NCBI GenBank assembly: GCA_964057225.1
Contig: OZ059900.1
Span: 8,804,001 to 8,868,000, forward strand
Direction of reading: 5' to 3'
DNA: 64,000 nt
Origin: Auanema rhodensis
Lineage: Eukaryota; Animalia; Nematoda
Below are positions 4,451-64,000 of this stretch, in pieces. The position numbers were made by a program, and so were the translations under genes. The notes beneath the pieces were generated by a model that searched no databases, was not told the origin of the DNA, and saw nothing but the letters and a program-made list of their open reading frames with translations. Every line of letters begins with the position of its first letter. The first letter of the stretch is position 1.

Positions 4451-5039
4451 CTTCAAACCCCAAAAAACCAATAATTCTTGATATTTTCGGTCCTTTTTGA
4501 CCAAAGTGGTTAAAATTGGACATATATATGTAAAAATAGTCAAAGTTTATGAATCCTGAATTTCAAATCCATATCTCAAAGGGTCTGATCAAAACATACA
4601 GTTTTCACATGTTTTGTACCCAAAATCGTTGAATATATGGCGTTTTGAGCATAAAAAGGCCCATATTTCAATCAGTTTCGATATTCGTGCAAAATACACC
4701 TATATCAACATTCTATGACAGTATTCCATACATTTAGTCGTTTTAGAAGAGAAAAGTATGCTTAAGATCAAAAGTTTGACTGATTTTGCCAAAATGCCCT
4801 ACAATCCCCAAAAAACCAATAATTCTTGATATTTTCGGTCCTTTTTGACCAAAGTGGTTAAAATTGAACATATATATGTAAAAATAGTCAAAGTTTATGA
4901 ATCCTGAATTTCAAATCCATATCTCAAAGGGTCTGATCAAAACATACAGTTTTCACATGTTTTGTACCCAAAATCGTTGAATATATGGCGTTTTGAGCAT
5001 AAAAAGGCCCATATTTCAATCAGTTTTGATATTCGTGCA

Positions 5040-37600: not shown

Positions 37601-38400
37601 CCTGAATTTCAAATCCATATCTCAAAGGGTCTGATCAAAACATACAGTTTTCACATGTTTTGTACCCAAAATCGTTGAATATATGGCGTTTTGAGCATAA
37701 AAAGGCCCATATTTCAATCAGTTTTGATATTCGTGCAAAATACACCTATATGAACATTCTTTGACAGTATTTCATACATTTAGTCGTTTTAGAAGAAAAA
37801 AATATGCTTAAGATCAAAAGTTTGACTGATTTTGCCAAAATGCCCTTCAAACCCCAAAAAACCAATAATTCTTGATATTTTCGGTCCTTTTTGACCAAAG
37901 TGGTTAAAATTGGACATATATATGTAAAAATAGTCAAAGTTTATGAATCCTGAATTTCAAATCCATATCTCAAAGGGTCTGATCAAAACATACAGTTTTC
38001 ACATGTTTTGTACCCAAAATCGTTGAATATATGGCGTTTTGAGCATAAAAAGACCCATATTTCAATCAGTTTTGATATTCGTGCAAAATACACCTATATG
38101 AACATTCTATGACAGTATTTCATACATTTAGTCGTTTTAGAAGAAAAAAATATGCTTAAGATCAAAAGTTTGACTGATTTAGCCAAAATGTCCTTCAAAC
38201 CCCAAAAAACCAATAATTCTTGATATTTTCGGTCCTTTTTGACCAAAGTGGTTAAAATTAAACATATATATGTGAAAATAGTCAAAGTTTATGAATCCTG
38301 AATTTCAAATCCATATCTCAAAGGGTCTGATCAAAACATACAGTTTTCACATGTTTTGTACCCAAAATCGTTGAATATATGGCGTTTTGAGCATAAAAAG
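27640..38400 (+). repeat. 14-monomer higher-order repeat, period 4872 bp (~2.2 copies), with an internal 5-monomer (1740-bp) duplication
   Basis: ORF pattern repeats at 28002/32874/37746 and 28350/33222/38094. Rare cggttct variant at about 31620 and 36490. Internal pairs 29046/30786 and 28350/30090. Confidence 0.9.
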
Positions 38401-41400
38401 GCCCATATTTCAATCAGTTTTGATATTCGTGCAAAATACACTTATATCAACATTCTATGACAGTATTCCATACATTTAGTCGTTTTAGAAGAAAAAAATA
38501 TGCTTAAGATCAAAAGTTTGACTGATTTAGCCAAAATGCCCTTCAAACCCCAAAAAACCAATAATTCTTGATATTTTCGGTCCTTTTCGACCAAAGTGGT
38601 TAAAATTGGACATATATATGTAAAAATAGTCAAAGTTTATGAATCCTGAATTTCAAATCCATATCTCAAAGGGTCTGATCAAAACATACAGTTTTCACAT
38701 GTTTTGTACCCAAAATCGTTGAATATATGGCGTTTTGAGCATAAAAAGGCCCATATTTCAATCAGTTTTGATATTCGTGCAAAATACACCTATATGAACA
38801 TTCTATGACAGTATTTTATACATTTAGTCGTTTTAGAAGAAAAAAATATGCTTAAGATCAAAAGTTTGACTGATTTTGCCAAAATGCCCTTCAAACCCCA
38901 AAAAACCAATAATTCTTGATATTTTCGGTCCTTTTTGACCAAAGTGGTTAAAATTGAACATATATATGTAAAAATAGTCAAAGTTTATGAAACCTGAATT
39001 TCAAATCCATATCTCAAAGGGTCTGATCAAAACATACAGTTTTCACATGTTTTGTACCCAAAATCGTTGAATATATGGCGTTTTGAGCATAAAAAGGCCC
39101 ATATTTCAATCAGTTTTGATATTCGTGCAAAATACACCTATATGAACATTCTTTGACAGTATTTCATACATTTAGTCGTTTTAGAAGAAAAAAATATGCT
39201 TAAGATCAAAAGTTTGACTGATTTTGCCAAAATGCCCTTCAAACCCCAAAAAACCAATAATTCTTGATATTTTCGGTCCTTTTTGACCAAAGTGGTTAAA
39301 ATTGGACATATATATGTAAAAATAGTCAAAGTTTATGAATCCTGAATTTCAAATCCATATCTCAAAGGGTCTGATCAAAACATACAGTTTTCACATGTTT
39401 TGTACCCAAAATCGTTGAATATATGGCGTTTTGAGCTTAAAAAGGCCCATATTTCAATCAGTTTTGATATTCGTGCAACATACACCTATATGAACATTCT
39501 ATGACAGTATTTCATACATTTAGTCGTTTTAGAAGAAAAAAATATGCTTAAGATCAAAAGTTTGACTGATTTAGCCAAAATGTCCTTCAAACCCAAAAAA
39601 CCAATAATTCTTGATATTTTCGGTCCTTTTTGACCAAAGTGGTTAAAATTGAACATATATATGTGAAAATAGTCAAAGTTAATGAATCCTGAATTCCAAA
39701 TCCATATCTCAAAGGGTCTGATCAAAACATACAGTTTTCACATGTTTTGTAACCAAAATCGTTGAATATATGGCGTTTTGAGCATAAAAAGGCCCATATT
39801 TCAATCAGTTTTGATATTCGTGCAAAATACACTTATATCAACATTCTATGACAGTATTCCATACATTTAGTCGTTTTAGAAGAAAAAAATATGCTTAAGA
39901 TCAAAAGTTTGACTGATTTAGCCAAAATGCCCTTCAAACCCCAAAAAACCAATAATTCTTGATATTTTCGGTCCTTTTTGACCAAAGTGGTTAAAAATGG
40001 ACATATATATGTAAAAATAGTCAAAGTTTATGAATCCTGAATTTCAAATCCATATCTCAAAGGGTCTGATCAAAACATACAGTTTTCACATGTTTTGTAC
40101 CCAAAATCGTTGAATATATGGCGTTTTGAGCATAAAAAGGCCCATATTTCAATCAGTTTTGATAATCGTACAAAATACACCTATATGAACATTCTATGAC
40201 AGTATTACATACATTTAGTCGTTTTAGAACAAAAAAATATGCTTAAGATTAAAAGTTTGACTGATTTTGCCAAAATGCCCTTCAAACCCCAAAAAACCAA
40301 TAATTCTTGATATTTTCGGTCCTTTTTGACCAAAGTGGTTAAAATTGAACATATATATGTAAAAATAGTCAAAGTTTATGAATCCTGAATTTCAAATCCA
40401 TATCTCAAAGGGTCTGATCAAAACATACAGTTTTCACATGTTTTGTACCCAAAATCGTTGAATATATGGCGTTTTGAGCATAAAAAGGCCCATATTTCAA
40501 TCAGTTTTGATATTCGTGCAAAATACACTTATATCAACATTCTATGACAGTATTCCATACATTTAGTCGTTTTAGAAGAAAAAAATATGCTTAAGATCAA
40601 AAGTTTGACTGATTTAGCCAAAATGCCCTTCAAACCCCAAAAAACCAATAATTCTTGATATTTTCGGTCCTTTTTGACCAAAGTGGTTAAAATTGGACAT
40701 ATATATGTAAAAATAGTCAAAGTTTATGAATCCTGAATTTCAAATCCACATCTCAAAGGGTCTGATCAAAACATACAGTTTTCACATGTTTTGTACCCAA
40801 AATCGTTGAATATATGGCGTTTTGAGCATAAAAAGGCCCATATTTCAATCAGTTTTGATATTCGTGCAAAATACACCTATATGAACATTCTATGACAGTA
40901 TTTCATACATTTAGTCGTTTTAGAAGAAAAAAATATGCTTAAGATCAAAAGTTTGACTGATTTTGCCAAAATGCCCTTCAAACCCCAAAAAACCAATAAT
41001 TCTTGATATTTTCGGTCCTTTTTGAACAAAGTGGTTAAAATTGAACATATATATGTAAAAATAGTCAAAGTTTATGAAACCTGAATTTCAAATCCATATC
41101 TCAAAGGGTCTGATCAAAACATACAGTTTTCACATGTTTTGTACCCAAAATCGTTGAATATATGGCGTTTTGAGCATAAAAAGGCCCATATTTCAATCAG
41201 TTTCGATATTCGTGCAAAATACACCTATATCAACATTCTATGACAGTATTCCATACATTTAGTCGTTTTAGAAGAAAAAAATATGCTTAAGATCAAAAGT
41301 TTGACTGATTTTGCCAAAATGCCCTTCAATCCCCAAAAAACCAATAATTCTTGATATTTTCGGTCCTTTTTGACCAAAGTGGTTAAAATTGAACATATAT

Positions 41401-44400
41401 ATGTAAAAATAGTCAAAGTTTATGAATCCTGAATTTCAAATCCATATCTCAAAGGGTCTGATCAAAACATACAGTTTTCACATGTTTTGTACCCAAAATC
41501 GTTGAATATATGGCGTTTTGAGCATAAAAAGGCCCATATTTCAATCAGTTTTGATATTCGTGCAAAATACACCTATATGAACATTCTTTGACAGTATTTC
41601 ATACATTTAGTCGTTTTAGAAGAAAAAAATATGCTTAAGATCAAAAGTTTGACTGATTTTGCCAAAATGCCCTTCAAACCCCAAAAAACCAATAATTCTT
41701 GATATTTTCGGTCCTTTTTGACCAAAGTGGTTAAAATTGGACATATATATGTAAAAATAGTCAAAGTTTATGAATCCTGAATTTCAAATCCATATCTCAA
41801 AGGGTCTGATCAAAACATACAGTTTTCACATGTTTTGTACCCAAAATCGTTGAATATATGGCGTTTTGAGCTTAAAAAGGCCCATATTTCAATCAGTTTT
41901 GATATTCGTGCAAAATACACCTATATGAACATTCTATGACAGTATTTCATACATTTAGTCGTTTTAGAAGAAAAAAATATGCTTAAGATCAAAAGTTTGA
42001 CTGATTTTGCCAAAATGCCCTTCAAACCCCAAAAAACCAATAATTCTTGATATTTTCGGTCCTTTTTGACCAAAGTGGTTAAAATTGAACATATATATGT
42101 AAAAATAGTCAAAGTTTATGAAACCTGAATTTCAAATCCATATCTCAAAGGGTCTGATCAAAACATACAGTTTTCACATGTTTTGTACCCAAAATCGTTG
42201 AATATATGGCGTTTTGAGCATAAAAAGGCCCATATTTCAATCAGTTTTGATATTCGTGCAAAATACACCTATATGAACATTCTATGACAGTATTTCATAC
42301 ATTTAGTCGTTTTAGAAGAAAAAAATATGCTTAAGATCAAAAGTTTGACTGATTTAGCCAAAATGCCCTTCAAACCCCAAAAAACCAATAATTCTTGATA
42401 TTTTCGGTCCTTTTTGACCAAAGTGGTTAAAATTGAACATATATATGTAAAAATAGTCAAAGTTTATGAAACCTGAATTTCAAATCCATATCTCAAAGGG
42501 TCTGATCAAAACATACAGTTTTCACATGTTTTGTACCCAAAATCGTTGAATATATGGCGTTTTGAGCATAAAAAGACCCATATTTCAATCAGTTTTGATA
42601 TTCGTGCAAAATACACCTATATGAACATTCTATGACAGTATTTCATACATTTAGTCGTTTTAGAAGAAAAAAATATGCTTAAGATCAAAAGTTTGACTGA
42701 TTTAGCCAAAATGTCCTTCAAACCCCAAAAAACCAATAATTCTTGATATTTTCGGTCCTTTTTGACCAAAGTGGTTAAAATTAAACATATATATGTGAAA
42801 ATAGTCAAAGTTTATGAATCCTGAATTTTAAATCCATATCTCAAAGGGTCTGATCAAAACATACAGTTTTCACATGTTTTGTACCCAAAATCGTTGAATA
42901 TATGGCGTTTTGAGCATAAAAAGGCCCATATTTCAATCAGTTTTGATATTCGTGCAAAATACACCTATATGAACATTCTATGACAGTATTTCATACATTT
43001 AGTCGTTTTAGAAGAAAAAAATATGCTTAAGATCCAAAGTTTGACTGATTTTGCCAAAATGCCCTTCAAACCCCAAAAAACCAATAATTCTTGATATTTT
43101 CGGTCCTTTTTGACCAAAGTGGTTAAAATTGGACATATATATGTAGAAATAGTCGAAGTTTATGAATCCTGAATTTCAAATCCATATCTCAAAGGGTCTG
43201 ATCAAAACATACAGTTTTCACATGTTTTGTACCCAAAATCGTTGAATATATGGCGTTTTGAGCATAAAAAGGCCCATATTTCAATCAGTTTCGATATTCG
43301 TGCAAAATACACCTATATCAACATTCTATGACAGTATTCCATACATTTAGTCGTTTTAGAAGAAAAAAATATGCTTAAGATCAAAAGTTTGACTGATTTT
43401 GCCAAAATGCCCTTCAATCCCCAAAAAACCAATAATTCTTGATATTTTCGGTCCTTTTCGACCAAAGTGGTTAAAATTGAACATATATATGTAAAAATAG
43501 TCAAAGTTTATGAATCCTGAATTTCAAATCCATATCTCAAAGGGTCTGATCAAAACATACAGTTTTCACATGTTTTGTACCCAAAATCGTTGAATATATG
43601 GCGTTTTGAGCATAAAAAGGCCCATATTTCAATCAGTTTTGATATTCGTGCAAAATACACCTATATGAACATTCTTTGACAGTATTTCATACATTTAGTC
43701 GTTTTAGAAGAAAAAAATATGCTTAAGATCAAAAGTTTGACTGATTTTGCCAAAATGCCCTTCAAACCCCAAAAAACCAATAATTCTTGATATTTTCGGT
43801 CCTTTTTGACCAAAGTGGTTAAAATTGGACATATATATGTAAAAATAGTCAAAGTTTATGAATCCTGAATTTCAAATCCATATCTCAAAGGGTCTGATCA
43901 AAACATACAGTTTTCACATGTTTTGTACCCAAAATCGTTGAATATATGGCGTTTTGAGCATAAAAAGGCCCATATTTCAATCAGTTTTGATATTCGTGCA
44001 AAATACACCTATATGAACATTCTATGACAGTATTTCATACATTTAGTCGTTTTAGAAGAAAAAAATATGCTTAAGATCAAAAGTTTGACTGATTTAGCCA
44101 AAATGCCCTTCAAACCCCAAAAAACCAATAATTCTTGATATTTTCGGTCCTTTTTGACCAAAGTGGTTAAAATTGGACATATATATGTAGAAACAGTCGA
44201 AGTTTATGAATCCTGAATTTCAAATCCATATCTCAAAGGGTCTGATCAAAACATACAGTTTTCACATGTTTTGTACCCAAAATCGTTGAATATATGGCGT
44301 TTTGAGCATAAAAAGGCCCATATTTCAATCAGTTTTGATATTCGTGCAAAGTACACCTATATGAACATTTTATGACAGTATTTCATATATTTAGTCGTTT

Positions 44401-47400
44401 TAGAAGAAAAAAATATGCTTAAGATCAAAAGTTTGACTGATTTTGCCAAAATGCCCTTCAAACCCCAAAAAACCAATAATTCTTGATATTTTCGGTCCTT
44501 TTTGACCAAAGTGGTTAAAATTGAACATATATATGTTAAAATAGTCAAAGTTTATAAATCCTGAACTTCAAATCCATATCTCAAAGGGTCTGATCAAAAC
44601 ATACAGTTTTCACATGTTTTGTACCCAGAATCGTTGAATATATGGCGTTTTGAGCATAAAAAGACCCATATTTCAATCAGTTTTGATATTCGTGCAAAAT
44701 ACACCTATATGAACATTCTATGACATTATTTCATACTATTAGTCGTTTTAGAAGAAAAAAATATGCTTAAGATCAAAAGTTTGACTGATTTTGCCAAAAT
44801 GCCCTTCAAACCTCAAAAAACCAATAATTCTTGATATTTTCGGTCCTTTTTGACCAAAGTAGTTAAAATTGAACATATAGATGTGAAAATAGTCAAAGTT
44901 TATGAATCCTAAACTTCAGATCCATATCTCAAAGGGTCTGATCTAAACATACAGTTTTCACATGTTTTGTACCCAAAATCGTTGAATATATGGCGTTTTG
45001 AGCATAAAAAGGCCCATATTTCAATCAGTTTTGATATTCGTGCAAATTACACCTATATAAACATTCTATGACAGTATTTCATAAATTTAGTCGTTTTAGA
45101 AGAAAAAAATATGCTTAAGATCAAAAGTTTGAGTGATTTTGCCAAAATGCCCTTCAAACCCCAAAAAACCAATAATTCTTGATATTTTCGGTCCTTTTTG
45201 ACCAAAGTAGTTAAAATTGAACATATAGATGTGAAAATAGTCAAAGTTTATGAATCCTAAACTTCAGATCCATATCTCAAAGGGTCTGATCTAAACATAC
45301 AGTTTTCACATGTTTTGTACCCAAAATCGTTGAATATATGGCGTTTTGAGCATAAAAAGGCCCATATTTCAATCAGTTTTGATATTCGTGCAAATTACAC
45401 CTATATAAACATTCTATGACAGTATTTCATAAATTTAGTCGTTTTAGAAGAAAAAAATATGCTTAAGATCAAAAGTTTGAGTGATTTTGCCAAAATGCCC
45501 TTCAAACCCCAAAAAACCAATAATTCTTGATATTTTCGGTCCTTTTTGACCAAAGTGGTTAAAATTGGACATATATATGTAAAAATAGTCAAAGTTTATG
45601 AATCCTGAATTTCAAATCCATATCTCAAAGGGTCTGATCAAAACATACAGTTTTCACATGTTTTGTACCCAAAATCGTTGAATATATGGCGTTTTGAGCA
45701 TAAAAAGGCCCATATTTCAATCAGTTTTGATATTCGTGCAAAATACACCTATATGAACATTCTATGACAGTATTTCATACATTTAGTCGTTTTAGAAGAA
45801 AAAAATATGCTTAAGATCAAAAGTTTGACTGATTTAGCCAAAATGCCCTTCAAACCCCAAAAAACCAATAATTCTTGATATTTTCGGTCCTTTTTGACCA
45901 AAGTGGTTAAAATTGGACATATATATGTAGAAACAGTCGAAGTTTATGAATCCTGAATTTCAAATCCATATCTCAAAGGGTCTGATCAAAACATACAGTT
46001 TTCACATGTTTTGTACCCAAAATCGTTGAATATATGGCGTTTTGAGCATAAAAAGGCCCATATTTCAATCAGTTTTGATATTCGTGCAAAGTACACCTAT
46101 ATGAACATTTTATGACAGTATTTCATATATTTAGTCGTTTTAGAAGAAAAAAATATGCTTAAGATCAAAAGTTTGACTGATTTTGCCAAAATGCCCTTCA
46201 AACCCCAAAAAACCAATAATTCTTGATATTTTCGGTCCTTTTTGACCAAAGTGGTTAAAATTGAACATATATATGTTAAAATAGTCAAAGTTTATAAATC
46301 CTGAACTTCAAATCCATATCTCAAAGGGTCTGATCAAAACATACAGTTTTCACATGTTTTGTACCCAGAATCGTTGAATATATGGCGTTTTGAGCATAAA
46401 AAGACCCATATTTCAATCAGTTTTGATATTCGTGCAAAATACACCTATATGAACATTCTATGACATTATTTCATACTATTAGTCGTTTTAGAAGAAAAAA
46501 ATATGCTTAAGATCAAAAGTTTGACTGATTTTGCCAAAATGCCCTTCAAACCTCAAAAAACCAATAATTCTTGATATTTTCGGTCCTTTTTGACCAAAGT
46601 AGTTAAAATTGAACATATAGATGTGAAAATAGTCAAAGTTTATGAATCCTAAACTTCAGATCCATATCTCAAAGGGTCTGATCTAAACATACAGTTTTCA
46701 CATGTTTTGTACCCAAAATCGTTGAATATATGGCGTTTTGAGCATAAAAAGGCCCATATTTCAATCAGTTTTGATATTCGTGCAAATTACACCTATATAA
46801 ACATTCTATGACAGTATTTCATAAATTTAGTCGTTTTAGAAGAAAAAAATATGCTTAAGATCAAAAGTTTGAGTGATTTTGCCAAAATGCCCTTCAAACC
46901 CCAAAAAACCAATAATTCTTGATATTTTCGGTCCTTTTTGACCAAAGTGGTTAAAATTGAACATATATATGTTAAAATAGTCAAAGTTTATAAATCCTGA
47001 ATTTCAAATCCATATCTCAAAGGGTCTGATCAAAACATACAGTTTTCACATGTTTTGTACCCAGAATCGTTGAATATATGGCGTTTTGAGCATAAAAAGG
47101 CCCATATTTCAATCAGTTTTGATATTCGTGCAAAATACACCTATATGAACATTCTATGACATTATTTCATAAATTTAGTCGTTTTAGAAGAAAAAAATAT
47201 GCTTAAGATCAAAAGTTTGAGTGATTTTGCCAAAATGCCCTTCAAACCCCAAAAAACCAATAATTCTTGATATTTTCGGTCCTTTTTGACCAAAGTGGTT
47301 AAAATTGAACATATATATGTTAAAATAGTCAAAGTTTATAAATCCTGAATTTCAAATCCATATCTCAAAGGGTCTGATCTAAACATACAGTTTTCACATG

Positions 47401-47714
47401 TTTTGTACCCAAAATCGTTGAATATATGGCGTTTTGAGCATAAAAAGGCCCATATTTCAATCAGTTTTGATATTCGTGCAAAATACACCTATATGAACAT
47501 TCTATGACAGTATTTCATACATTTAGTCGTTTTAGAAGAAAAAAATATGCTTAAGATCAAAAGTTTGACTGATTTAGCCAAAATGCCCTTCAAACCCCAA
47601 AAAACCAATAATTCTTGATATTTTCGGTCCTTTTTGACCAAAGTGGTTAAAATTGGACATATATATGTAAAAATAGTCAAAGTTTATGAATCCTGAATTT
47701 CAAATCCATATCTC

Positions 47715-48138
47715 AATTATTGGTTTTTTGAGGTTTGAAGGGCATTTTGGCAAAATCAGTCAAACTTTTGATCTTAAGCATATTTTTTTCTTCTAAAACG
47801 ACTAATAGTATGAAATAATGTCATAGAATGTTCATATAGGTGTATTTTGCACGAATATCAAAACTGATTGAAATATGGGCCTTTTTATGCTCAAAACGCC
47901 ATATATTCAACGATTCTGGGTACAAAACATGTGAAAACTGTATGTTTTGATCAGACCCTTTGAGATATGGATTTGAAGTTCAGGATTTATAAACTTTGAC
48001 TATTTTAACATATATATGTTCAATTTTAACCACTTTGGTCAAAAAGGACCGAAAATATCAAGAATTATTGGTTTTTTGGGGTTTGAAGGGCATTTTGGCA
48101 AAATCAGTCAAACTTTTGATCTTAAGCATATTTTTTTT
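47715..48138 (-). repeat. Inverted satellite cassette, copy 1 (~424 bp, ~1.2 monomers)
   Basis: Left junction ccatatctc-aa-ttattggtttttt; right junction cttaagcatattttttttcc-aaaaaccaataatt. The interior is reverse-complement monomer. Array phase shifts by +193 bp (ORFs 47489 to 48378 = 2x348+193). Confidence 0.97.
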
Positions 48139-51100
48139 CCAAAAACCAATAATTCTTGATATTTTCGGTCCTTTTTGACCAAAGTGGTTGAAATTGAACA
48201 TATATATGTAAAAATAGTCAAAGATTATGAATCCTGATTTTCAAATCCATATCTCAAAGGGTCTGATCAAAACATACAGTTTTCACATGTTTTGTACCCA
48301 AAATCGTTGAATATATGGCGTTTTGAGCATAAAAAGGCCCATATTTCAATCAGTTTTGATATTCGTGCAAAATACACCTATATAAACATTCTATGACAGT
48401 ATTTCATAAATTTAGTCGTTTTAGAAGAAAAAAATATGCTTAAGATCAAAAGTTTGAGTGATTTTGCCAAAATGCCCTTCAAACCCCAAAAAACCAATAA
48501 TTCTTGATATTTTCGGTCCTTTTTGACCAAAGTGGTTAAAATTGAACATATATATGTTAAAATAGTCAAAGTTTATAAATCCTGAATTTCAAATCCATAT
48601 CTCAAAGGGTCTGATCAAAACATACAGTTTTCACATGTTTTGTACCCAGAATCGTTGAATATATGGCGTTTTGAGCATAAAAAGGCCCATATTTCAATCA
48701 GTTTTGATATTCGTGCAAAATACACCTATATGAACATTCTATGACATTATTTCATATATTTAGTCGTTTTAGAAGAAAAAAATATGCTTAAGATCAAAAG
48801 TTTGAGTGATTTTGCCAAAATGCCCTTCAAACCCCAAAAAACCAATAATTCTTGATATTTTCGGTCCTTTTTGACCAAAGTGGTTAAAATTGAACATATA
48901 TATGTTAAAATAGTCAAAGTTTATAAATCCTGAATTTCAAATCCATATCTCAAAGGGTCTGATCAAAACATACAGTTTTCACATGTTTTGTACCCAGAAT
49001 CGTTGAATATATGGCGTTTTGAGCATAAAAAGGCCCATATTTCAATCAGTTTTGATATTCGTGCAAAATACACCTATATGAACATTCTATGACATTATTT
49101 CATATATTTAGTCGTTTTAGAAGAAAAAAATATGCTTAAGATCAAAAGTTTGACTGATTTAGCCAAAATGCCCTTCAAACCCCAAAAAACCAATAATTCT
49201 TGATATTTTCGGTCCTTTTTGACCAAAGTGGTTAAAATTGAACATATATATGTAAAAATAGTCAAAGTTTATGAAACCTGAATTTCAAATCCATATCTCA
49301 AAGGGTCTGATCAAAACATACAGTTTTCACATGTTTTGTACCCAAAATCGTTGAATATATGGCGTTTTGAGCATAAAAAGACCCATATTTCAATCAGTTT
49401 TGATATTCGTGCAAAATACACCTATATGAACATTCTATGACAGTATTTCATACATTTAGTCGTTTTAGAAGAAAAAAATATGCTTAAGATCAAAAGTTTG
49501 ACTGATTTAGCCAAAATGTCCTTCAAACCCCAAAAAACCAATAATTCTTGATATTTTCGGTCCTTTTTGACCAAAGTGGTTAAAATTAAACATATATATG
49601 TGAAAATAGTCAAAGTTTATGAATCCTGAATTTCAAATCCATATCTCAAAGGGTCTGATCAAAACATACAGTTTTCACATGTTTTGTACCCAAAATCGTT
49701 GAATATATGGCGTTTTGAGCATAAAAAGGCCCATATTTCAATCAGTTTTGATATTCGTGCAAAATACACCTATATGAACATTCTATGACAGTATTTCATA
49801 CATTTAGTCGTTTTAGAAGAAAAAAATATGCTTAAGATCAAAAGTTTGACTGATTTTGCCAAAATGCCCTTCAAACCCCAAAAAACCAATAATTCTTGAT
49901 ATTTTCGGTCCTTTTTGACCAAAGTGGTTAAAATTGGACATATATATGTAGAAATAGTCGAAGTTTATGAATCCTGAATTTCAAATCCATATCTCAAAGG
50001 GTCTGATCAAAACATACAGTTTTCACATGTTTTGTACCCAAAATCGTTGAATATATGGCGTTTTGAGCATAAAAAGGCCCATATTTCAATCAGTTTCGAT
50101 ATTCGTGCAAAATACACCTATATCAACATTCTATGACAGTATTCCATACATTTAGTCGTTTTAGAAGAAAAAAATATGCTTAAGATCAAAAGTTTGACTG
50201 ATTTTGCCAAAATGCCCTTCAATCCCCAAAAAACCAATAATTCTTGATATTTTCGGTCCTTTTCGACCAAAGTGGTTAAAATTGAACATATATATGTAAA
50301 AATAGTCAAAGTTTATGAATCCTGAATTTCAAATCCATATCTCAAAGGGTCTGATCAAAACATACAGTTTTCACATGTTTTGTACCCAAAATCGTTGAAT
50401 ATATGGCGTTTTGAGCATAAAAAGGCCCATATTTCAATCAGTTTTGATATTCGTGCAAAATACACCTATATGAACATTCTTTGACAGTATTTCATACATT
50501 TAGTCGTTTTAGAAGAAAAAAATATGCTTAAGATCAAAAGTTTGACTGATTTTGCCAAAATGCCCTTCAAACCCCAAAAAACCAATAATTCTTGATATTT
50601 TCGGTCCTTTTTGACCAAAGTGGTTAAAATTGGACATATATATGTAGAAACAGTCGAAGTTTATGAATCCTGAATTTCAAATCCATATCTCAAAGGGTCT
50701 GATCAAAACATACAGTTTTCACATGTTTTGTACCCAAAATCGTTGAATATATGGCGTTTTGAGCATAAAAAGGCCCATATTTCAATCAGTTTTGATATTC
50801 GTGCAAAGTACACCTATATGAACATTTTATGACAGTATTTCATATATTTAGTCGTTTTAGAAGAAAAAAATATGCTTAAGATCAAAAGTTTGACTGATTT
50901 TGCCAAAATGCCCTTCAAACCTCAAAAAACCAATAATTCTTGATATTTTCGGTCCTTTTTGACCAAAGTAGTTAAAATTGAACATATAGATGTGAAAATA
51001 GTCAAAGTTTATGAATCCTAAACTTCAGATCCATATCTCAAAGGGTCTGATCTAAACATACAGTTTTCACATGTTTTGTACCCAAAATCGTTGAATATAT

Positions 51101-51735
51101 GGCGTTTTGAGCATAAAAAGGCCCATATTTCAATCAGTTTTGATATTCGTGCAAAATACACCTATATGAACATTCTATGACATTATTTCATACTATTAGT
51201 CGTTTTAGAAGAAAAAAATATGCTTAAGATCAAAAGTTTGAGTGATTTTGCCAAAATGCCCTTCAAACCCCAAAAAACCAATAATTCTTGATATTTTCGG
51301 TCCTTTTTGACCAAAGTGGTTAAAATTGAACATATATATGTTAAAATAGTCAAAGTTTATAAATCCTGAATTTCAAATCCATATCTCAAAGGGTCTGATC
51401 TAAACATACAGTTTTCACATGTTTTGTACCCAAAATCGTTGAATATATGGCGTTTTGAGCATAAAAAGGCCCATATTTCAATCAGTTTTGATATTCGTGC
51501 AAAATACACCTATATGAACATTCTATGACAGTATTTCATACATTTAGTCGTTTTAGAAGAAAAAAATATGCTTAAGATCAAAAGTTTGACTGATTTAGCC
51601 AAAATGCCCTTCAAACCCCAAAAAACCAATAATTCTTGATATTTTCGGTCCTTTTTGACCAAAGTGGTTAAAATTGGACATATATATGTAAAAATAGTCA
51701 AAGTTTATGAATCCTGAATTTCAAATCCATATCTC

Positions 51736-52159
51736 AATTATTGGTTTTTTGAGGTTTGAAGGGCATTTTGGCAAAATCAGTCAAACTTTTGATCTTAAGC
51801 ATATTTTTTTCTTCTAAAACGACTAATAGTATGAAATAATGTCATAGAATGTTCATATAGGTGTATTTTGCACGAATATCAAAACTGATTGAAATATGGG
51901 CCTTTTTATGCTCAAAACGCCATATATTCAACGATTCTGGGTACAAAACATGTGAAAACTGTATGTTTTGATCAGACCCTTTGAGATATGGATTTGAAGT
52001 TCAGGATTTATAAACTTTGACTATTTTAACATATATATGTTCAATTTTAACCACTTTGGTCAAAAAGGACCGAAAATATCAAGAATTATTGGTTTTTTGG
52101 GGTTTGAAGGGCATTTTGGCAAAATCAGTCAAACTTTTGATCTTAAGCATATTTTTTTT
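51736..52159 (-). repeat. Inverted satellite cassette, copy 2
   Basis: Same junctions and interior as copy 1, 4021 bp downstream. Confidence 0.97.
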
Positions 52160-55100
52160 CCAAAAACCAATAATTCTTGATATTTTCGGTCCTTTTTGAC
52201 CAAAGTGGTTGAAATTGAACATATATATGTAAAAATAGTCAAAGATTATGAATCCTGATTTTCAAATCCATATCTCAAAGGGTCTGATCAAAACATACAG
52301 TTTTCACATGTTTTGTACCCAGAATCGTTGAATATATGGCGTTTTGAGCATAAAAAGGCCCATATTTCAATCAGTTTTGATATTCGTGCAAAATACACCT
52401 ATATGAACATTCTATGACATTATTTCATAAATTTAGTCGTTTTAGAAGAAAAAAATATGCTTAAGATCAAAAGTTTGAGTGATTTTGCCAAAATGCCCTT
52501 CAAACCCCAAAAAACCAATAATTCTTGATATTTTCGGTCCTTTTTGACCAAAGTGGTTAAAATTGAACATATATATGTTAAAATAGTCAAAGTTTATAAA
52601 TCCTGAATTTCAAATCCATATCTCAAAGGGTCTGATCTAAACATACAGTTTTCACATGTTTTGTACCCAAAATCGTTGAATATATGGCGTTTTGAGCATA
52701 AAAAGGCCCATATTTCAATCAGTTTTGATATTCGTGCAAAATACACCTATATAAACATTCTATGACAGTATTTCATAAATTTAGTCGTTTTAGAAGAAAA
52801 AAATATGCTTAAGATCAAAAGTTTGAGTGATTTTGCCAAAATGCCCTTCAAACCCCAAAAAACCAATAATTCTTGATATTTTCGGTCCTTTTTGACCAAA
52901 GTGGTTAAAATTGAACATATATATGTTAAAATAGTCAAAGTTTATAAATCCTGAATTTCAAATCCATATCTCAAAGGGTCTGATCAAAACATACAGTTTT
53001 CACATGTTTTGTACCCAGAATCGTTGAATATATGGCGTTTTGAGCATAAAAAGGCCCATATTTCAATCAGTTTTGATATTCGTGCAAAATACACCTATAT
53101 GAACATTCTATGACATTATTTCATATATTTAGTCGTTTTAGAAGAAAAAAATATGCTTAAGATCAAAAGTTTGAGTGATTTTGCCAAAATGCCCTTCAAA
53201 CCCCAAAAAACCAATAATTCTTGATATTTTCGGTCCTTTTTGACCAAAGTGGTTAAAATTGAACATATATATGTTAAAATAGTCAAAGTTTATAAATCCT
53301 GAATTTCAAATCCATATCTCAAAGGGTCTGATCAAAACATACAGTTTTCACATGTTTTGTACCCAGAATCGTTGAATATATGGCGTTTTGAGCATAAAAA
53401 GGCCCATATTTCAATCAGTTTCGATATTCGTGCAAAATACACCTATATCAACATTCTATGACAGTATTCCATACATTTAGTCGTTTTAGAAGAAAAAAAT
53501 ATGCTTAAGATCAAAAGTTTGACTGATTTTGCCAAAATGCCCTTCAATCCCCAAAAAACCAATAATTCTTGATATTTTCGGTCCTTTTCGACCAAAGTGG
53601 TTAAAATTGAACATATATATGTAAAAATAGTCAAAGTTTATGAATCCTGAATTTCAAATCCATATCTCAAAGGGTCTGATCAAAACATACAGTTTTCACA
53701 TGTTTTGTACCCAAAATCGTTGAATATATGGCGTTTTGAGCATAAAAAGGCCCATATTTCAATCAGTTTTGATATTCGTGCAAAATACACCTATATGAAC
53801 ATTCTTTGACAGTATTTCATACATTTAGTCGTTTTAGAAGAAAAAAATATGCTTAAGATCAAAAGTTTGACTGATTTTGCCAAAATGCCCTTCAAACCCC
53901 AAAAAACCAATAATTCTTGATATTTTCGGTCCTTTTTGACCAAAGTGGTTAAAATTGGACATATATATGTAGAAACAGTCGAAGTTTATGAATCCTGAAT
54001 TTCAAATCCATATCTCAAAGGGTCTGATCAAAACATACAGTTTTCACATGTTTTGTACCCAAAATCGTTGAATATATGGCGTTTTGAGCATAAAAAGGCC
54101 CATATTTCAATCAGTTTTGATATTCGTGCAAAGTACACCTATATGAACATTTTATGACAGTATTTCATATATTTAGTCGTTTTAGAAGAAAAAAATATGC
54201 TTAAGATCAAAAGTTTGACTGATTTTGCCAAAATGCCCTTCAAACCCCAAAAAACCAATAATTCTTGATATTTTCGGTCCTTTTTGACCAAAGTGGTTAA
54301 AATTGAACATATATATGTTAAAATAGTCAAAGTTTTTAAATCCTGAACTTCAAATCCATATCTCAAAGGGTCTGATCAAAACATACAGTTTTCACATGTT
54401 TTGTACCCAGAATCGTTGAATATATGGCGTTTTGAGCATAAAAAGACCCATATTTCAATCAGTTTTGATATTCGTGCAAAATACACCTATATGAACATTC
54501 TATGACATTATTTCATACTATTAGTCGTTTTAGAAGAAAAAAATATGCTTAAGATCAAAAGTTTGACTGATTTTGCCAAAATGCCCTTCAAACCTCAAAA
54601 AACCAATAATTCTTGATATTTTCGGTCCTTTTTGACCAAAGTAGTTAAAATTGAACATATAGATGTGAAAATAGTCAAAGTTTATGAATCCTAAACTTCA
54701 GATCCATATCTCAAAGGGTCTGATCTAAACATACAGTTTTCACATGTTTTGTACCCAAAATCGTTGAATATATGGCGTTTTGAGCATAAAAAGGCCCATA
54801 TTTCAATCAGTTTTGATATTCGTGCAAATTACACCTATATAAACATTCTATGACAGTATTTCATAAATTTAGTCGTTTTAGAAGAAAAAAATATGCTTAA
54901 GATCAAAAGTTTGAGTGATTTTGCCAAAATGCCCTTCAAACCCCAAAAAACCAATAATTCTTGATATTTTCGGTCCTTTTTGACCAAAGTGGTTAAAATT
55001 GAACATATATATGTTAAAATAGTCAAAGTTTATAAATCCTGAATTTCAAATCCATATCTCAAAGGGTCTGATCAAAACATACAGTTTTCACATGTTTTGT

Positions 55101-55756
55101 ACCCAGAATCGTTGAATATATGGCGTTTTGAGCATAAAAAGGCCCATATTTCAATCAGTTTTGATATTCGTGCAAAATACACCTATATGAACATTCTATG
55201 ACATTATTTCATAAATTTAGTCGTTTTAGAAGAAAAAAATATGCTTAAGATCAAAAGTTTGAGTGATTTTGCCAAAATGCCCTTCAAACCCCAAAAAACC
55301 AATAATTCTTGATATTTTCGGTCCTTTTTGACCAAAGTGGTTAAAATTGAACATATATATGTTAAAATAGTCAAAGTTTATAAATCCTGAACTTCAAATC
55401 CATATCTCGAAGGGTCTGATCAAAACATACAGTTTTCACATGTTTTGTACCCAAAATCGTTGAATATATGGCGTTTTGAGCATAAAAAGGCCCATATTTC
55501 AATCAGTTTTGATATTCGTGCAAAATACACCTATATGAACATTCTATGACAGTATTTCATACATTTAGTCGTTTTAGAAGAAAAAAATATGCTTAAGATC
55601 AAAAGTTTGACTGATTTAGCCAAAATGCCCTTCAAACCCCAAAAAACCAATAATTCTTGATATTTTCGGTCCTTTTTGACCAAAGTGGTTAAAATTGGAC
55701 ATATATATGTAAAAATAGTCAAAGTTTATGAATCCTGAATTTCAAATCCATATCTC

Positions 55757-56180
55757 AATTATTGGTTTTTTGAGGTTTGAAGGGCATTTTGGCAAAATCA
55801 GTCAAACTTTTGATCTTAAGCATATTTTTTTCTTCTAAAACGACTAATAGTATGAAATAATGTCATAGAATGTTCATATAGGTGTATTTTGCACGAATAT
55901 CAAAACTGATTGAAATATGGGCCTTTTTATGCTCAAAACGCCATATATTCAACGATTCTGGGTACAAAACATGTGAAAACTGTATGTTTTGATCAGACCC
56001 TTTGAGATATGGATTTGAAGTTCAGGATTTATAAACTTTGACTATTTTAACATATATATGTTCAATTTTAACCACTTTGGTCAAAAAGGACCGAAAATAT
56101 CAAGAATTATTGGTTTTTTGGGGTTTGAAGGGCATTTTGGCAAAATCAGTCAAACTTTTGATCTTAAGCATATTTTTTTT
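55757..56180 (-). repeat. Inverted satellite cassette, copy 3
   Basis: Same junctions and interior, 4021 bp after copy 2. Confidence 0.97.
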
Positions 56181-57340
56181 CCAAAAACCAATAATTCTTG
56201 ATATTTTCGGTCCTTTTTGACCAAAGTGGTTGAAATTGAACATATATATGTAAAAATAGTCAAAGATTATGAATCCTGATTTTCAAATCCATATCTCAAA
56301 GGGTCTGATCAAAACATACAGTTTTCACATGTTTTGTACCCAAAATCGTTGAATATATGGCGTTTTGAGCATAAAAAGGCCCATATTTCAATCAGTTTTG
56401 ATATTCGTGCAAAATACACCTATATGAACATTCTATGACATTATTTCATAAATTTAGTCGTTTTAGAAGAAAAAAATATGCTTAAGATCAAAAGTTTGAG
56501 TGATTTTGCCAAAATGCCCTTCAAACCCCAAAAAACCAATAATTCTTGATATTTTCGGTCCTTTTTGACCAAAGTGGTTAAAATTGAACATATATATGTT
56601 AAAATAGTCAAAGTTTATAAATCCTGAATTTCAAATCCATATCTCAAAGGGTCTGATCTAAACATACAGTTTTCACATGTTTTGTACCCAAAATCGTTGA
56701 ATATATGGCGTTTTGAGCATAAAAAGGCCCATATTTCAATCAGTTTTGATATTCGTGCAAAATACACCTATATAAACATTCTACGACAGTATTTCATAAA
56801 TTTAGTCGTTTTAGAAGAAAAAAATATGCTTAAGATCAAAAGTTTGAGTGATTTTGCCAAAATGCCCTTCAAACCCCAAAAAACCAATAATTCTTGATAT
56901 TTTCGGTCCTTTTTGACCAAAGTGGTTAAAATTGAACATATATATGTTAAAATAGTCAAAGTTTATAAATCCTGAATTTCAAATCCATATCTCAAAGGGT
57001 CTGATCAAAACATACAGTTTTCACATGTTTTGTACCCAGAATCGTTGAATATATGGCGTTTTGAGCATAAAAAGGCCCATATTTCAATCAGTTTTGATAT
57101 TCGTGCAAAATACACCTATATGAACATTCTATGACATTATTTCATATATTTAGTCGTTTTAGAAAAAAAAATATGCTTAAGATCAAAAGTTTGACTGATT
57201 TAGCCAAAATGCCCTTCAAACCCCAAAAAACCAATAATTCTTGATATTTTCGGTCCTTTTTGACCAAAGTGGTTAAAATTGGACATATATATGTAAAAAT
57301 AGTCAAAGTTTATGAATCCTGAATTTCAAATCCATATCTC

Positions 57341-57764
57341 AATTATTGGTTTTTTGAGGTTTGAAGGGCATTTTGGCAAAATCAGTCAAACTTTTGATCT
57401 TAAGCATATTTTTTTCTTCTAAAACGACTAATAGTATGAAATAATGTCATAGAATGTTCATATAGGTGTATTTTGCACGAATATCAAAACTGATTGAAAT
57501 ATGGGCCTTTTTATGCTCAAAACGCCATATATTCAACGATTCTGGGTACAAAACATGTGAAAACTGTATGTTTTGATCAGACCCTTCGAGATATGGATTT
57601 GAAGTTCAGGATTTATAAACTTTGACTATTTTAACATATATATGTTCAATTTTAACCACTTTGGTCAAAAAGGACCGAAAATATCAAGAATTATTGGTTT
57701 TTTGGGGTTTGAAGGGCATTTTGGCAAAATCAGTCAAACTTTTGATCTTAAGCATATTTTTTTT
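57341..57764 (-). repeat. Inverted satellite cassette, copy 4
   Basis: Same junctions, 1584 bp after copy 3. Carries a T>C change at 57587 (acccttcgag) absent from copies 1-3. Confidence 0.97.
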
Positions 57765-60721
57765 CCAAAAACCAATAATTCTTGATATTTTCGGTCCTTT
57801 TTGACCAAAGTGGTTGAAATTGAACATATATATGTAAAAATAGTCAAAGATTATGAATCCTGATTTTCAAATCCATATCTCAAAGGGTCTGATCAAAACA
57901 TACAGTTTTCACATGTTTTGTACCCAGAATCGTTGAATATATGGCGTTTTGAGCATAAAAAGGCCCATATTTCAATCAGTTTTGATATTCGTGCAAAATA
58001 CACCTATATGAACATTCTATGACATTATTTCATAAATTTAGTCGTTTTAGAAGAAAAAAATATGCTTAAGATCAAAAGTTTGAGTGATTTTGCCAAAATG
58101 CCCTTCAAACCCCAAAAAACCAATAATTCTTGATATTTTCGGTCCTTTTTGACCAAAGTGGTTAAAATTGAACATATATATGTTAAAATAGTCAAAGTTT
58201 ATAAATCCTGAATTTCAAATCCATATCTCAAAGGGTCTGATCTAAACATACAGTTTTCACATGTTTTGTACCCAAAATCGTTGAATATATGGCGTTTTGA
58301 GCATAAAAAGGCCCATATTTCAATCAGTTTTGATATTCGTGCAAAATACACCTATATAAACATTCTATGACAGTATTTCATAAATTTAGTCGTTTTAGAA
58401 GAAAAAAATATGCTTAAGATCAAAAGTTTGAGTGATTTTGCCAAAATGCCCTTCAAACCCCAAAAAACCAATAATTCTTGATATTTTCGGTCCTTTTTGA
58501 CCAAAGTGGTTAAAATTGAACATATATATGTTAAAATAGTCAAAGTTTATAAATCCTGAATTTCAAATCCATATCTCAAAGGGTCTGATCAAAACATACA
58601 GTTTTCACATGTTTTGTACCCAGAATCGTTGAATATATGGCGTTTTGAGCATAAAAAGGCCCATATTTCAATCAGTTTTGATATTCGTGCAAAATACACC
58701 TATATGAACATTCTATGACATTATTTCATATATTTAGTCGTTTTAGAAAAAAAAATATGCTTAAGATCAAAAGTTTGACTGATTTTGCCAACATGCCCTT
58801 CAAACCCCAAAAAACCAATAATTCTTGATATTTTCGGTCCTTTTTGACCAAAGTGGTTGAAATTGAACATATATATGTAAAAATAGTCAAAGATTATGAA
58901 TCCTGATTTTCAAATCCATATCTCAAAGGGTCTGATCAAAACATACAGTTTTCACATGTTTTGTACCCAAAATCGTTGAATATATGGCGTTTTGAGCATA
59001 AAAAGGCCCATATTTCAATCAGTTTTGATATTCGTGCAAAATACACCTATATGAACATTTTATGACAGTATTTCATATATTTAGTCGTTTTAGAAAAAAA
59101 AAATATGCTTAAGATCAAAATTTTGAGTGATTTTGCCAACATGCCCTTCAAACCCCAAAAAACCAATAATTCTTGATATTTTCGGTCCTTTTTGACCAAA
59201 GTGGTTGAAATTGAACATATATATGTAAAAATAGTCAAAGATTATGAATCCTGATTTTCAAATCCATATCTCAAAGGGTCTGATCAAAACATACAGTTTT
59301 CACATGTTTTGTACCCAAAATCGTTGAATATATGGCGTTTTGAGCATAAAAAGGCCCATATTTCAATCAGTTTTGATATTCGTGCAAAATACACCTATAT
59401 GAACATTTTATGACAGTATTTCATATATTTAGTCGTTTTAGAAAAAAAAAATATGCTTAAGATCAAAATTTTGAGTGATTTTGCCAACATGCCCTTCAAA
59501 CCCCAAAAAACCAATAATTCTTGATATTTTCGGTCCTTTTTGACCAAAGTGGTTGAAATTGAACATATATATGTTAAAATAGTCAAAGTTTATAAATCCT
59601 GAATTTCAAATCCATATCTCAAAGGGTCTGATCAAAACATACAGTTTTCACATGTTTTGTACCCAGAATCGTTGAATATATGGCGTTTTGAGCATAAAAA
59701 GGCCCATATTTCAATCAGTTTTGATATTCGTGCAAAATACACCTATATGAACATTCTATGACATTATTTCATATATTTAGTCGTTTTAGAAAAAAAAATA
59801 TGCTTAAGATCAAAAGTTTGACTGATTTTGCCAACATGCCCTTCAAACCCCAAAAAACCAATAATTCTTGATATTTTCGGTCCTTTTTGACCAAAGTGGT
59901 TGAAATTGAACATATATATGTAAAAATAGTCAAAGATTATGAATCCTGATTTTCAAATCCATATCTCAAAGGGTCTGATCAAAACATACAGTTTTCACAT
60001 GTTTTGTACCCAAAATCGTTGAATATATGGCGTTTTGAGCATAAAAAGGCCCATATTTCAATCAGTTTTGATATTCGTGCAAAATACACCTATATGAACA
60101 TTTTATGACAGTATTTCATATATTTAGTCGTTTTAGAAAAAAAAAATATGCTTAAGATCAAAATTTTGAGTGATTTTGCCAACATGCCCTTCAAACCCCA
60201 AAAAACCAATAATTCTTGATATTTTCGGTCCTTTTTGACCAAAGTGGTTGAAATTGAACATATATATGTAAAAATAGTCAAAGATTATGAATCCTGATTT
60301 TCAAATCCATATCTCAAAGGGTCTGATCAAAACATACAGTTTTCACATGTTTTGTACCCAAAATCGTTGAATATATGGCGTTTTGAGCATAAAAAGGCCC
60401 ATATTTCAATCAGTTTTGATATTCGTGCAAAATACACCTATATGAACATTTTATGACAGTATTTCATATATTTAGTCGTTTTAGAAGAAAAAAATATGCT
60501 TAAGATCAAAAGTTTGACTGATTTTGCCAAAATGCCCTTCAAACCCCAAAAAACCAATAATTCTTGATATTTTCGGTCCTTTTCGACCAAAGTGGTTAAA
60601 ATTGAACATGTATATGTTAAAATAGTCAAAGTTTATAAATCCTGAATTTCAAATCCATATCTCAAAGGGTCTGATCAAAACATACAGTTTTCACATGTTT
60701 TGTACCCAGAATCGTTGAATA

Positions 60722-63700
60722 GAAAATATCAAGAATTATTGGTTTTTTGGGGTTTGAAGGGCATTTTGGCAAAATCAGTCAAACTTTTGATCTTAAGCAT
60801 ATTTTTTTCTTCTAAAACGACTAAATGTATGAAATACTGTCAAAGAATGTTCATATAGGTGTATTTTGCACGAATATCAAAACTGATTGAAATATGGGCC
60901 TTTTTATGCTCAAAACGCCATATATTCAACGATTTTGGGTACAAAACATGTGAAAACTGTATGTTTTGATCAGACCCTTTGAGATATGGATTTGAAATTC
61001 AGGATTCATAAACTTTGACTATTTTTACATATATATGTTCAATTTTAACCACTTTGGTCAAAAAGGACCGAAAATATCAAGAATTTTTGGTTTTTTGGGG
61101 ATTGAAGGGCATTTTGGCAAAATCAGTCAAACTTTTGATCTTAAGCATATTTTTTTCTTCTAAAACGACTAAATGTATGGAATACTGTCATAGAATGTTG
61201 ATATAGGTGTATTTTGCACGAATATCGAAACTGATTGAAATATGGGCCTTTTTATGCTCAAAACGCCATATATTCAACGATTTTGGGTACAAAACATGTG
61301 AAAACTGTATGTTTTGATCAGACCCTTTGAGATATGGATTTGAAATTCAGGTTTCATAAACTTTGACTATTTTTACATATATATGTTCAATTTTAACCAC
61401 TTTGTTCAAAAAGGACCGAAAATATCAAGAATTATTGGTTTTTTGGGGTTTGAAGGGCATTTTGGCAAAATCAGTCAAACTTTTGATCTTAAGCATATTT
61501 TTTTCTTCTAAAACGATTAAATGTATGAAATACTGTCATAGAATGTTCATATAGGTGTATTTTGCACGAATATCAAAACTGATTGAAATATGGGCCTTTT
61601 TATGCTCAAAACGCCATATATTCAACGATTTTGGGTACAAAACATGTGAAAACTGTATGTTTTGATCAGACCCTTTGAGATATGGATTTGAAATTCAGGA
61701 TTCATAAACTTTGACTATTTTTACATATATATGTTCAATTTTAACCACTTTGGTCAAAAAGGACCGAAAATATCAAGAATTATTGGTTTTTTGGGGTTTG
61801 AAGGGCATTTTGGCAAAATCAGTCAAACTTTTAATCTTAAGCATATTTTTTTCTTCTAAAACGACTAAATGTATGTAATACTGTCATAGAATGTTCATAT
61901 AGGTGTATTTTGCACGATTATCAAAACTGATTGAAATATGGGCCTTTTTATGCTCAAAACGCCATATATTCAACGATTTTGGGTACAAAACATGTGAAAA
62001 CTGTATGTTTTGATCAGACCCTTTGAGATATGGATTTGAAATTCAGGATTCATAAACTTTGACTATTTTTACATATATATGTCCAATTTTAACCACTTTG
62101 GTCAAAAAGGACCGAAAATATCAAGAATTATTGGTTTTTTGGGGTTTGAAGGGCATTTTGGCTAAATCAGTCAAACTTTTGATCTTAAGCATATTTTTTT
62201 CTTCTAAAACGACTAAATGTATGGAATACTGTCATAGAATGTTGATATAAGTGTATTTTGCACGAATATCAAAACTGATTGAAATATGGGCCTTTTTATG
62301 CTCAAAACGCCATATATTCAACGATTTTGGTTACAAAACATGTGAAAACTGTATGTTTTGATCAGACCCTTTGAGATATGGATTTGGAATTCAGGATTCA
62401 TTAACTTTGACTATTTTCACATATATATGTTCAATTTTAACCACTTTGGTCAAAAAGGACCGAAAATATCAAGAATTATTGGTTTTTTGGGTTTGAAGGA
62501 CATTTTGGCTAAATCAGTCAAACTTTTGATCTTAAGCATATTTTTTTCTTCTAAAACGACTAAATGTATGAAATACTGTCATAGAATGTTCATATAGGTG
62601 TATGTTGCACGAATATCAAAACTGATTGAAATATGGGCCTTTTTAAGCTCAAAACGCCATATATTCAACGATTTTGGGTACAAAACATGTGAAAACTGTA
62701 TGTTTTGATCAGACCCTTTGAGATATGGATTTGAAATTCAGGATTCATAAACTTTGACTATTTTTACATATATATGTCCAATTTTAACCACTTTGGTCAA
62801 AAAGGACCGAAAATATCAAGAATTATTGGTTTTTTGGGGTTTGAAGGGCATTTTGGCAAAATCAGTCAAACTTTTGATCTTAAGCATATTTTTTTCTTCT
62901 AAAACGACTAAATGTATGAAATACTGTCAAAGAATGTTCATATAGGTGTATTTTGCACGAATATCAAAACTGATTGAAATATGGGCCTTTTTATGCTCAA
63001 AACGCCATATATTCAACGATTTTGGGTACAAAACATGTGAAAACTGTATGTTTTGATCAGACCCTTTGAGATATGGATTTGAAATTCAGGTTTCATAAAC
63101 TTTGACTATTTTTACATATATATGTTCAATTTTAACCACTTTGGTCAAAAAGGACCGAAAATATCAAGAATTATTGGTTTTTTGGGGTTTGAAGGGCATT
63201 TTGGCAAAATCAGTCAAACTTTTGATCTTAAGCATATTTTTTTCTTCTAAAACGACTAAATGTATAAAATACTGTCAAAGAATGTTCATATAGGTGTATT
63301 TTGCACGAATATCAAAACTGATTGAAATATGGGCCTTTTTATGCTCAAAACGCCATATATTCAACGATTTTGGGTACAAAACATGTGAAAACTGTATGTT
63401 TTGATCAGACCCTTTGAGATATGGATTTGAAATTCAGGATTCATAAACTTTGACTATTTTTACATATATATGACCAATTTTAACCACTTTGGTCAAAAAG
63501 GACCGAAAATATCAAGAATTATTGGTTTTTTGGGGTTTGAAGGGCATTTTGGCTAAATCAGTCAAACTTTTGATCTTAAGCATATTTTTTTCTTCTAAAA
63601 CGACTAAATGTATAAAATACTGTCATAGAATGTTCATATAGGTGTATTTTGCACGAATATCAAAACTGATTGAAATATGGGTCTTTTTATGCTCAAAACG

Positions 63701-64000
63701 CCTTATATTCAACGATTTTGGGTACAAAACATGTGAAAACTGTATGTTTTGATCAGACCCTTTGAGATATGGATTTGAAATTCAGGTTTCATAAACTTTG
63801 ACTATTTTTACATATATATGTTCAATTTTAACCACTTTGGTCAAAAAGGACCGAAAATATCAAGAATTATTGGTTTTTTGGGGTTTGAAGGGCATTTTGG
63901 CAAAATCAGTCAAACTTTTGATCTTAAGCATATTTTTTTCTTCTAAAACGACTAAATGTATAAAATACTGTCATAGAATGTTCATATAGGTGTATTTTGC
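60722..64000 (-). repeat. Same 348-bp satellite in reverse orientation (~9.4 monomers, continuing past the window end)
   Basis: After ...atcgttgaata (60721) the sequence reads gaaaatatcaagaattattgg..., the reverse complement of the monomer. The repeat-derived ORFs move to the + strand (61015, 61363, 62059...). Confidence 0.99.

Follow-up and report, generated by a model that had tools for sequence, protein, structure and literature searches.

A mirror-order pair of satellite arms around a 19-kb spacer in Auanema rhodensis points to an inverted duplication

The window analysed here is a 64,000-nucleotide stretch of the nematode Auanema rhodensis (contig OZ059900.1 of assembly GCA_964057225.1, positions 8,804,001 to 8,868,000 of the forward strand), and all coordinates below count from its first base. 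According to Tandem Repeats Finder, the whole window is one tandem 348-bp repeat, an AT-rich satellite. Of all blocks of this satellite, those at 38.6-41.7 kb and 60.7-63.5 kb appear to be most closely related to one another; they are oppositely oriented and run in mirror order, which supports their reading as the two arms of an inverted duplication. The segment 60722-63473 is probably a separate genomic, opposite-orientation copy of 38610-41709, lying 19 kb from it and diverged by about 0.2% plus the deletion of one monomer.

The two arms and their mirror match

The reverse complement of 60722-64000 was aligned with the forward array, with one long gap permitted. In this mirror alignment, forward 38806-40401 corresponds to reversed 63277-61682 with 3 mismatches in 1596 bp, and forward 40750-41709 corresponds to reversed 61681-60722 with 2 mismatches in 960 bp. 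The core of the match therefore contains 5 mismatches in 2556 bp (99.8% identity), an arm divergence of 0.20% with a Poisson 95% interval of about 0.06-0.46%. Position 41709 is the exact mirror counterpart of 60722, as an earlier sequence-only reading of this DNA had proposed, and the last 364 bp before the junction are identical. The forward arm occupies 38610-41709 on the + strand and includes both monomers 40349 and 40697. The reversed arm occupies 60722-63473 on the - strand and mirrors 41709-38610 minus one monomer; beyond the 5 mismatches of its core (60722-63277), it has 2 more in 63278-63473.

The diagonal of the monomer matrix traces the same correspondence, pairing reversed monomer 61039 with forward monomer 41045 (1 difference), 61387 with 40697 (2), 61735 with 40001 (2), 62083 with 39653 (1), 62431 with 39306 (0), 62778 with 38958 (0), and 63126 with 38610 (2). 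It then breaks, with 9 differences between 63474 and 38262. As in a fold-back inverted duplication, the inverted copy starts exactly at the junction and keeps its mirror order over 7 monomers at 0-2 differences each. Of two ungapped registers, 38431-41709, that of the earlier reading, is correct near the junction, and 38083-41361 is correct farther out. The claim that the reversed domain mirrors this upstream block and not its neighbours agrees with the mirror comparison of the adjacent forward sequence 58019-60574, which gives 85 differences in 2556 bp (3.3%).

The match is specific to one locus. When one monomer may be skipped at each candidate locus, the reversed chain of 7 monomers has 8 differences at the best locus (38610), 21 at the runner-up, and a median of 50 across 141 loci. 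In a maximum-likelihood tree built from concatenated blocks, the reversed arm and the 38610 block are sisters with support of 100/99. The match is also reciprocal, because the forward block has no equally close forward partner: its best forward partner differs at 12-17 positions over 6 monomers versus 6 for the reversed arm. This unique, reciprocal match in mirror order, together with the block tree, upholds the earlier proposal that the two blocks are arms of an inverted duplication.

Rare sequence markers fall in the same register. TTGAACAAAG is found once per strand, at 41022 and 61400, and AAGATTAAAA once per strand, at 40245 and 61829; both are in mirror register and confined to the two mirrored partners. 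Two further marker pairs named in the sequence-only reading are less exclusive. The GTAACC pair at 39749/62329 is in register, but this motif has three further forward copies (four forward sites and one reverse site in all). GTATTTTATA is shared with a single forward site (38811) but has three copies in the reversed domain (63263, 63611, and 63959), only one of which had been listed. Two doubleton variants are carried by mirrored partners only, and a third variant is common only to monomer 38610 and reversed monomers.

Recurring monomer types make up the array; kinship is therefore diagnosed by the ordered chain and not by any single monomer. In whole-arm ungapped or megablast comparisons that allow no monomer skip, the true partner is barely the best (39 versus 43 mismatches) or tied. 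An identity-filtered megablast self-comparison missed the inverted pair, presumably through merging of high-scoring segment pairs, and the diagonals of the monomer matrix were used instead.

The arms carry a few private changes each, in line with what had been noted before. None of the five core differences recurs elsewhere in the array: the reversed arm has 2 of these singletons and the forward arm 3, the pattern expected of two copies mutating independently. The unpaired monomer reported at 40529 corresponds to a monomer-length stretch of the + strand at about 40402-40749 that has no partner in the mirror alignment; its placement is ambiguous, with the crossover somewhere from column 52 to column 180 of the monomer alignment. 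In reversed monomer 61387, column 52 has the allele of 40349, and the columns from 180 on have the alleles of 40697, including a private marker at column 343; the monomer is therefore a hybrid of those two forward monomers. It follows that the loss of one monomer is derived and belongs to the lineage of the reversed arm, produced by slippage or unequal exchange, and that the forward arm retains the ancestral arrangement.

At the outer end, strict collinearity breaks at about 63.3-63.5 kb, where the reversed domain contains extra monomers of the 38610 type. The outer 723 bp (63278-64000 versus 38083-38805) show 15 mismatches, which is the background level. The two outer reversed monomers at 63474-64000 (- strand) both carry a C>T marker at column 207; this marker is present in 63126, 63474, and the partial monomer 63822-64000, and its only carrier in the forward array is monomer 38610. 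The segment 63822-64000 is 100% identical to 38779-38957. The break is thus a local difference in the copy number of the 38610-type monomer. The mirror symmetry holds for 60722-63473 but fails for 63474-64000, which does not mirror 38083-38609. Monomer 63126 and the partial monomer 63822 are near-identical, and the intervening 63474 differs by 7, which suggests that a unit of two monomers repeats at the edge of the window (63126-64000).

The array, its direct duplications, spacer, and cassettes

One reference monomer matches 195 places in the window at 96-99% identity, on the + strand over 3-60721 and on the - strand over 60722-64000. The forward array (1-60721, + strand) consists of recurring 348-bp monomer types and recent direct multi-monomer duplications. 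The window contains one strand switch, at 60721/60722, and the reversed domain reaches the window end at 64000. The same monomer family therefore lies on opposite strands on either side of one point inside the array, as in a satellite strand switch. The GC content of the window is 30%, and the sign of the GC skew changes at the switch. The window contains no open reading frame of at least 100 amino acids and is non-coding satellite DNA. A reading of the array in terms of open reading frames was rejected on this ground, and the peptide tags used in the sequence-only reading are mere labels for DNA variants.

A literature search with three exact 25-26-mers of the satellite found no paper, and a search on "348 bp" gave only unrelated taxa. 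A wasp satellite of 349 bp, listed in an atlas of centromeres, is alike in period length only, and no identity with it is claimed. Satellite 31-mers are present in 14 public runs from five coded organisms, at shares from 0.98 down to 0.10, and their summed word depths in those runs reach into the millions. The satellite family is abundant and common to related taxa.

This array is a patchwork of recent direct segmental duplications, and near-identical copies of several monomers are the norm in it. Direct runs of 5-13 monomers differ at 1-6 positions. They include a 13-monomer run at an offset of 14 monomers with 1 difference (27474-36869), a 12-monomer run at an offset of 17 monomers with 1 difference (18428-28517), an 11-monomer run at an offset of 29 monomers with 3 differences (3-13910), and an 8-monomer run at an offset of 21 monomers. 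The inverted pair, at 0.20%, is somewhat older than the youngest direct pairs, which differ by about 0.02-0.08%. In size and similarity the inverted pair is ordinary for the array; its orientation alone sets it apart. The direct runs, as in-register near-identical blocks, and the hybrid monomer 61387 at its deletion have the form expected of unequal exchange, but unequal exchange alone does not produce the inverted orientation of the pair.

The spacer between the arms (41710-60721, + strand) is 19,012 bp long and is not duplicated in the arms, as in fold-back inverted duplications. Its first part, 41710-44176, contains monomers of ordinary type, and 44177-60721 contains variant types and four inverted cassettes. 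The sequence-only reading had the spacer coincide almost exactly with the divergent, cassette-bearing domain. The two do overlap loosely, but their limits leave 0.4-2.5 kb of slack: some 2.5 kb of ordinary monomers precede the new types, which start at about 44.2 kb. The block 42124-43841 is 99.7% identical to 48929-50646 (5 mismatches in 1.7 kb), which lies within the cassette domain between the first two cassettes, and this near-identity ties the start of the spacer to that domain. A breakpoint shared by this duplication and the end of the forward arm at 41709 was rejected, as the near-identity starts at 42124.

The sequence-only reading had the divergent domain probably expand within the inversion or be captured by it, and the relative age of the spacer can be approached from its divergence. 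Copies of the cassette unit differ by 0.13-0.52%, which is not separable from the 0.20% between the arms, so divergence does not give the order of the inverted duplication and the expansion of the cassette domain. The monomer types of the spacer differ from those of the arms by up to about 3%. As this is far above the 0.2% accumulated in the lifetime of the arms, mutation after the arms parted cannot account for the spacer types, and some seed of the spacer, at least, probably already lay between the arms at that time.

The four inverted cassettes, each 438 bp long and on the - strand, interrupt the forward array at 47715-48152, 51736-52173, 55757-56194, and 57341-57778. They differ from one another by 0-1 mismatch, and from the forward segments 44407-44827, 46147-46567, and 54189-54609 by 1-2 mismatches (1 each for the first two segments, which lie 2.9 and 1.15 kb upstream of the first cassette). 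The reversed arm, to which the cassettes are not close, was rejected as the cassette source in view of this near-identity to forward segments at 44.4, 46.1, and 54.2 kb. The cassette junctions join forward position 60 to reverse position 305 and reverse position 215 to forward position 292, phases that differ from those of the arm junction (116/317). At these two cassette junctions, the BLAST hits share 2 and 12 bp; the 12-bp overlap falls in a T/A-rich run, which makes true microhomology uncertain. About 438 bp of inverted copy stand in place of 231 bp of monomer. Together with the junction phases, this replacement argues that the cassettes are no simple in-place inversions. The cassette records a separate event in the same array, in which a nearby segment was copied in inverted orientation.

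How the inverted arm may have arisen

The head-to-head junction at 60721/60722 (60716-60727) joins forward monomer position 116 to reversed monomer position 317 and is blunt, with 0 bp of microhomology. Reads over 60422-61021 were checked in four runs: one from the probable source sample, one from a second sample, one from a sample of another study, and one from a second organism. The available pieces were contigs of about 60-100 bp (Logan), and none of those listed bridges 60721/60722. In all four runs, depth among these contigs is lowest in the bin 60702-60721, left of the junction. Contigs of ordinary satellite sequence cannot extend over 60721/60722, so such a dip is expected.

Templated inverted copying from the junction is our tentative preference among the possible origins. 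A broken end or collapsed fork at 60721 would re-prime on the opposite strand at 41709, and leftward copying from 41709 would then yield both the head-to-head junction and the mirror-order arm in one step. The event would be a fold-back or template switch with a 19-kb spacer. During or after the copying, slippage by one monomer or unequal exchange would fuse 40349 and 40697 into the hybrid 61387, and the copy number of the 38610-type monomer would change at the outer end. A small part of the weight given to templated copying goes to a variant in which long-tract conversion into an already reversed array would halt at the junction, where homology ends. Copying from the junction explains why the arms are identical up to the last junction base, and the cassette is a precedent for inverted copying in the same array. 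The 19,012-bp spacer also lies within the span of spacer sizes, 766-70,466 bp, reported for fold-back inverted duplications in humans (PMC3907307).

Several observations count against templated copying. The junction lacks microhomology, the 19-kb spacer is larger than 20 of the 21 sequenced fold-back spacers (PMC3907307), the reversed orientation extends past the strictly collinear part, and the short contigs supply no bridge. In addition, 44% of forward 6-monomer chains have a non-overlapping direct partner at 6 or fewer differences. With direct partners this common, a partner for the inverted block is expected even under plain inversion.

The strongest alternative starts from that expectation. 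A direct segmental duplication would have been followed by a two-break inversion whose distal breakpoint fell inside one of the copies, placing that copy head-to-head at 60721. The near-identical direct runs of 13, 12, 11, and 8 monomers and the frequency of close direct partners speak for such a history, as multi-monomer duplication is the norm here and the plain inversion of an ordinary direct duplicate therefore fits about as well as a dedicated inverted-duplication event. A blunt junction is compatible with end joining, a reversed domain longer than the collinear block is accommodated, and at 7.9 monomers the arm has a length usual among the direct blocks. This history also demands that the breakpoint fall inside the duplicated block, although this is not rare (roughly 0.4). 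It further needs an original offset of at least about 62 monomers, whereas the near-identical runs reach offsets of at most 32, with one looser match (99.5%) at 48. The cassette, moreover, shows that inverted copying occurs in the array. Taken by itself, duplication followed by inversion is possible but on the unlikely side; we regard it and templated copying as nearly equally likely.

An assembly artefact is improbable. A chimeric read or graph error could have linked the array with the other strand of the same region, perhaps from the other haplotype, and the missing bridge, the depth minimum at the junction, and a divergence of 0.2% with a monomer indel (which two haplotypes might also show) are all compatible with this. 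The five singletons and the hybrid-monomer deletion indicate, however, that the arms are not the same sequence traversed twice, and the outer reversed monomers lack an allelic-looking counterpart in mirror position. Hairpin or missed-adapter chimeras fold back at once, unlike an arm pair with a 19-kb spacer. Chance recurrence of common monomer types in blocks without specific kinship is effectively refuted: single reversed-arm monomers do have identical or one-difference copies at many forward positions, and several loci tie at 23-26 differences if the skip is disallowed, but the gap between best and next locus when skips are allowed everywhere, the mirror register of the doubleton variants, and the tree support for the pair all stand against it.

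Relation to known rearrangements and meaning for the array

Human beta-satellite and HSat3 arrays have abundant strand switches, which are also present in active alpha-satellite arrays (10.64898/2026.07.22.740206). Abrupt switches within arrays are reported to be frequent and to be by-products of array expansion (10.64898/2026.07.22.740206; PMC9186530). For the T2T-CHM13 assembly, satellites are described as having a mosaic inversion structure, and satellite expansion is described within symmetric inverted duplications (PMC9186530). The array described here resembles the human cases in having one monomer family on both strands and a head-to-head switch within the array. It differs in that a near-identical copy in mirror order can be traced 19 kb away, in organism and satellite family, and in having one switch in the window.

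Rearrangements in which a fold-back inverted duplication encloses a spacer form a described class, with human spacers of 766-70,466 bp and a median of 3,428 bp; 13 of the 21 sequenced human junctions have 2-8 bp of microhomology (PMC3907307). They share with the present arms a mirror-order inverted copy that starts at the junction and a non-duplicated spacer (PMC3907307). In contrast to that class, the junction here has no inverted microhomology and the spacer is longer than most of those reported. No terminal deletion, telomere healing, or dicentric history is visible in the window, and the pair lies within a tandem array and is apparently fixed in an assembly. Foldback inversions in yeast are reportedly similar, with an inverted copy separated from its original by a spacer.

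Two further systems share part of this structure. Satellite duplication by unequal exchange likewise gives blocks of about 8 monomers, near-identity, and hybrid monomers at one-monomer deletions, but it yields direct copies only, and the inverted orientation found here needs an additional or different event. In large palindromes and inverted repeats with a spacer, such as those of sex chromosomes, the arms are kept similar by arm-to-arm conversion. The present arms, at least 99.75% identical, also flank a unique spacer in opposite orientation; they differ from palindromes in being only about 2.75 kb long and made of satellite monomers, and they yielded no evidence of ongoing conversion.

The inverted arm pair is a well-resolved instance of a known structure, as complete assemblies have already yielded both satellite strand switches and satellite inverted duplications, and no new kind of element is revealed. 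An inverted repeat of 2.75 kb at 99.75% identity could in principle flip its spacer by homologous recombination. It is a speculative and rather unlikely extension that the array evolves partly by recurrent templated inverted copying, with a 438-bp cassette taken from 1-3 kb upstream and an arm of at least 2.75 kb from 19 kb upstream; the 19-kb cassette-bearing domain would then be invertible by recombination between the arms and might be polymorphic in orientation. The arms provide a clean, datable case that relates a satellite strand switch to the array's own sequence, and from the mirror-order copy, the private mutations, and the hybrid monomer the succession of events can be reconstructed. 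Provided that the junction is genuine, telling copying from inversion would bear on how satellite arrays, possibly centromeric ones, gain inverted domains.

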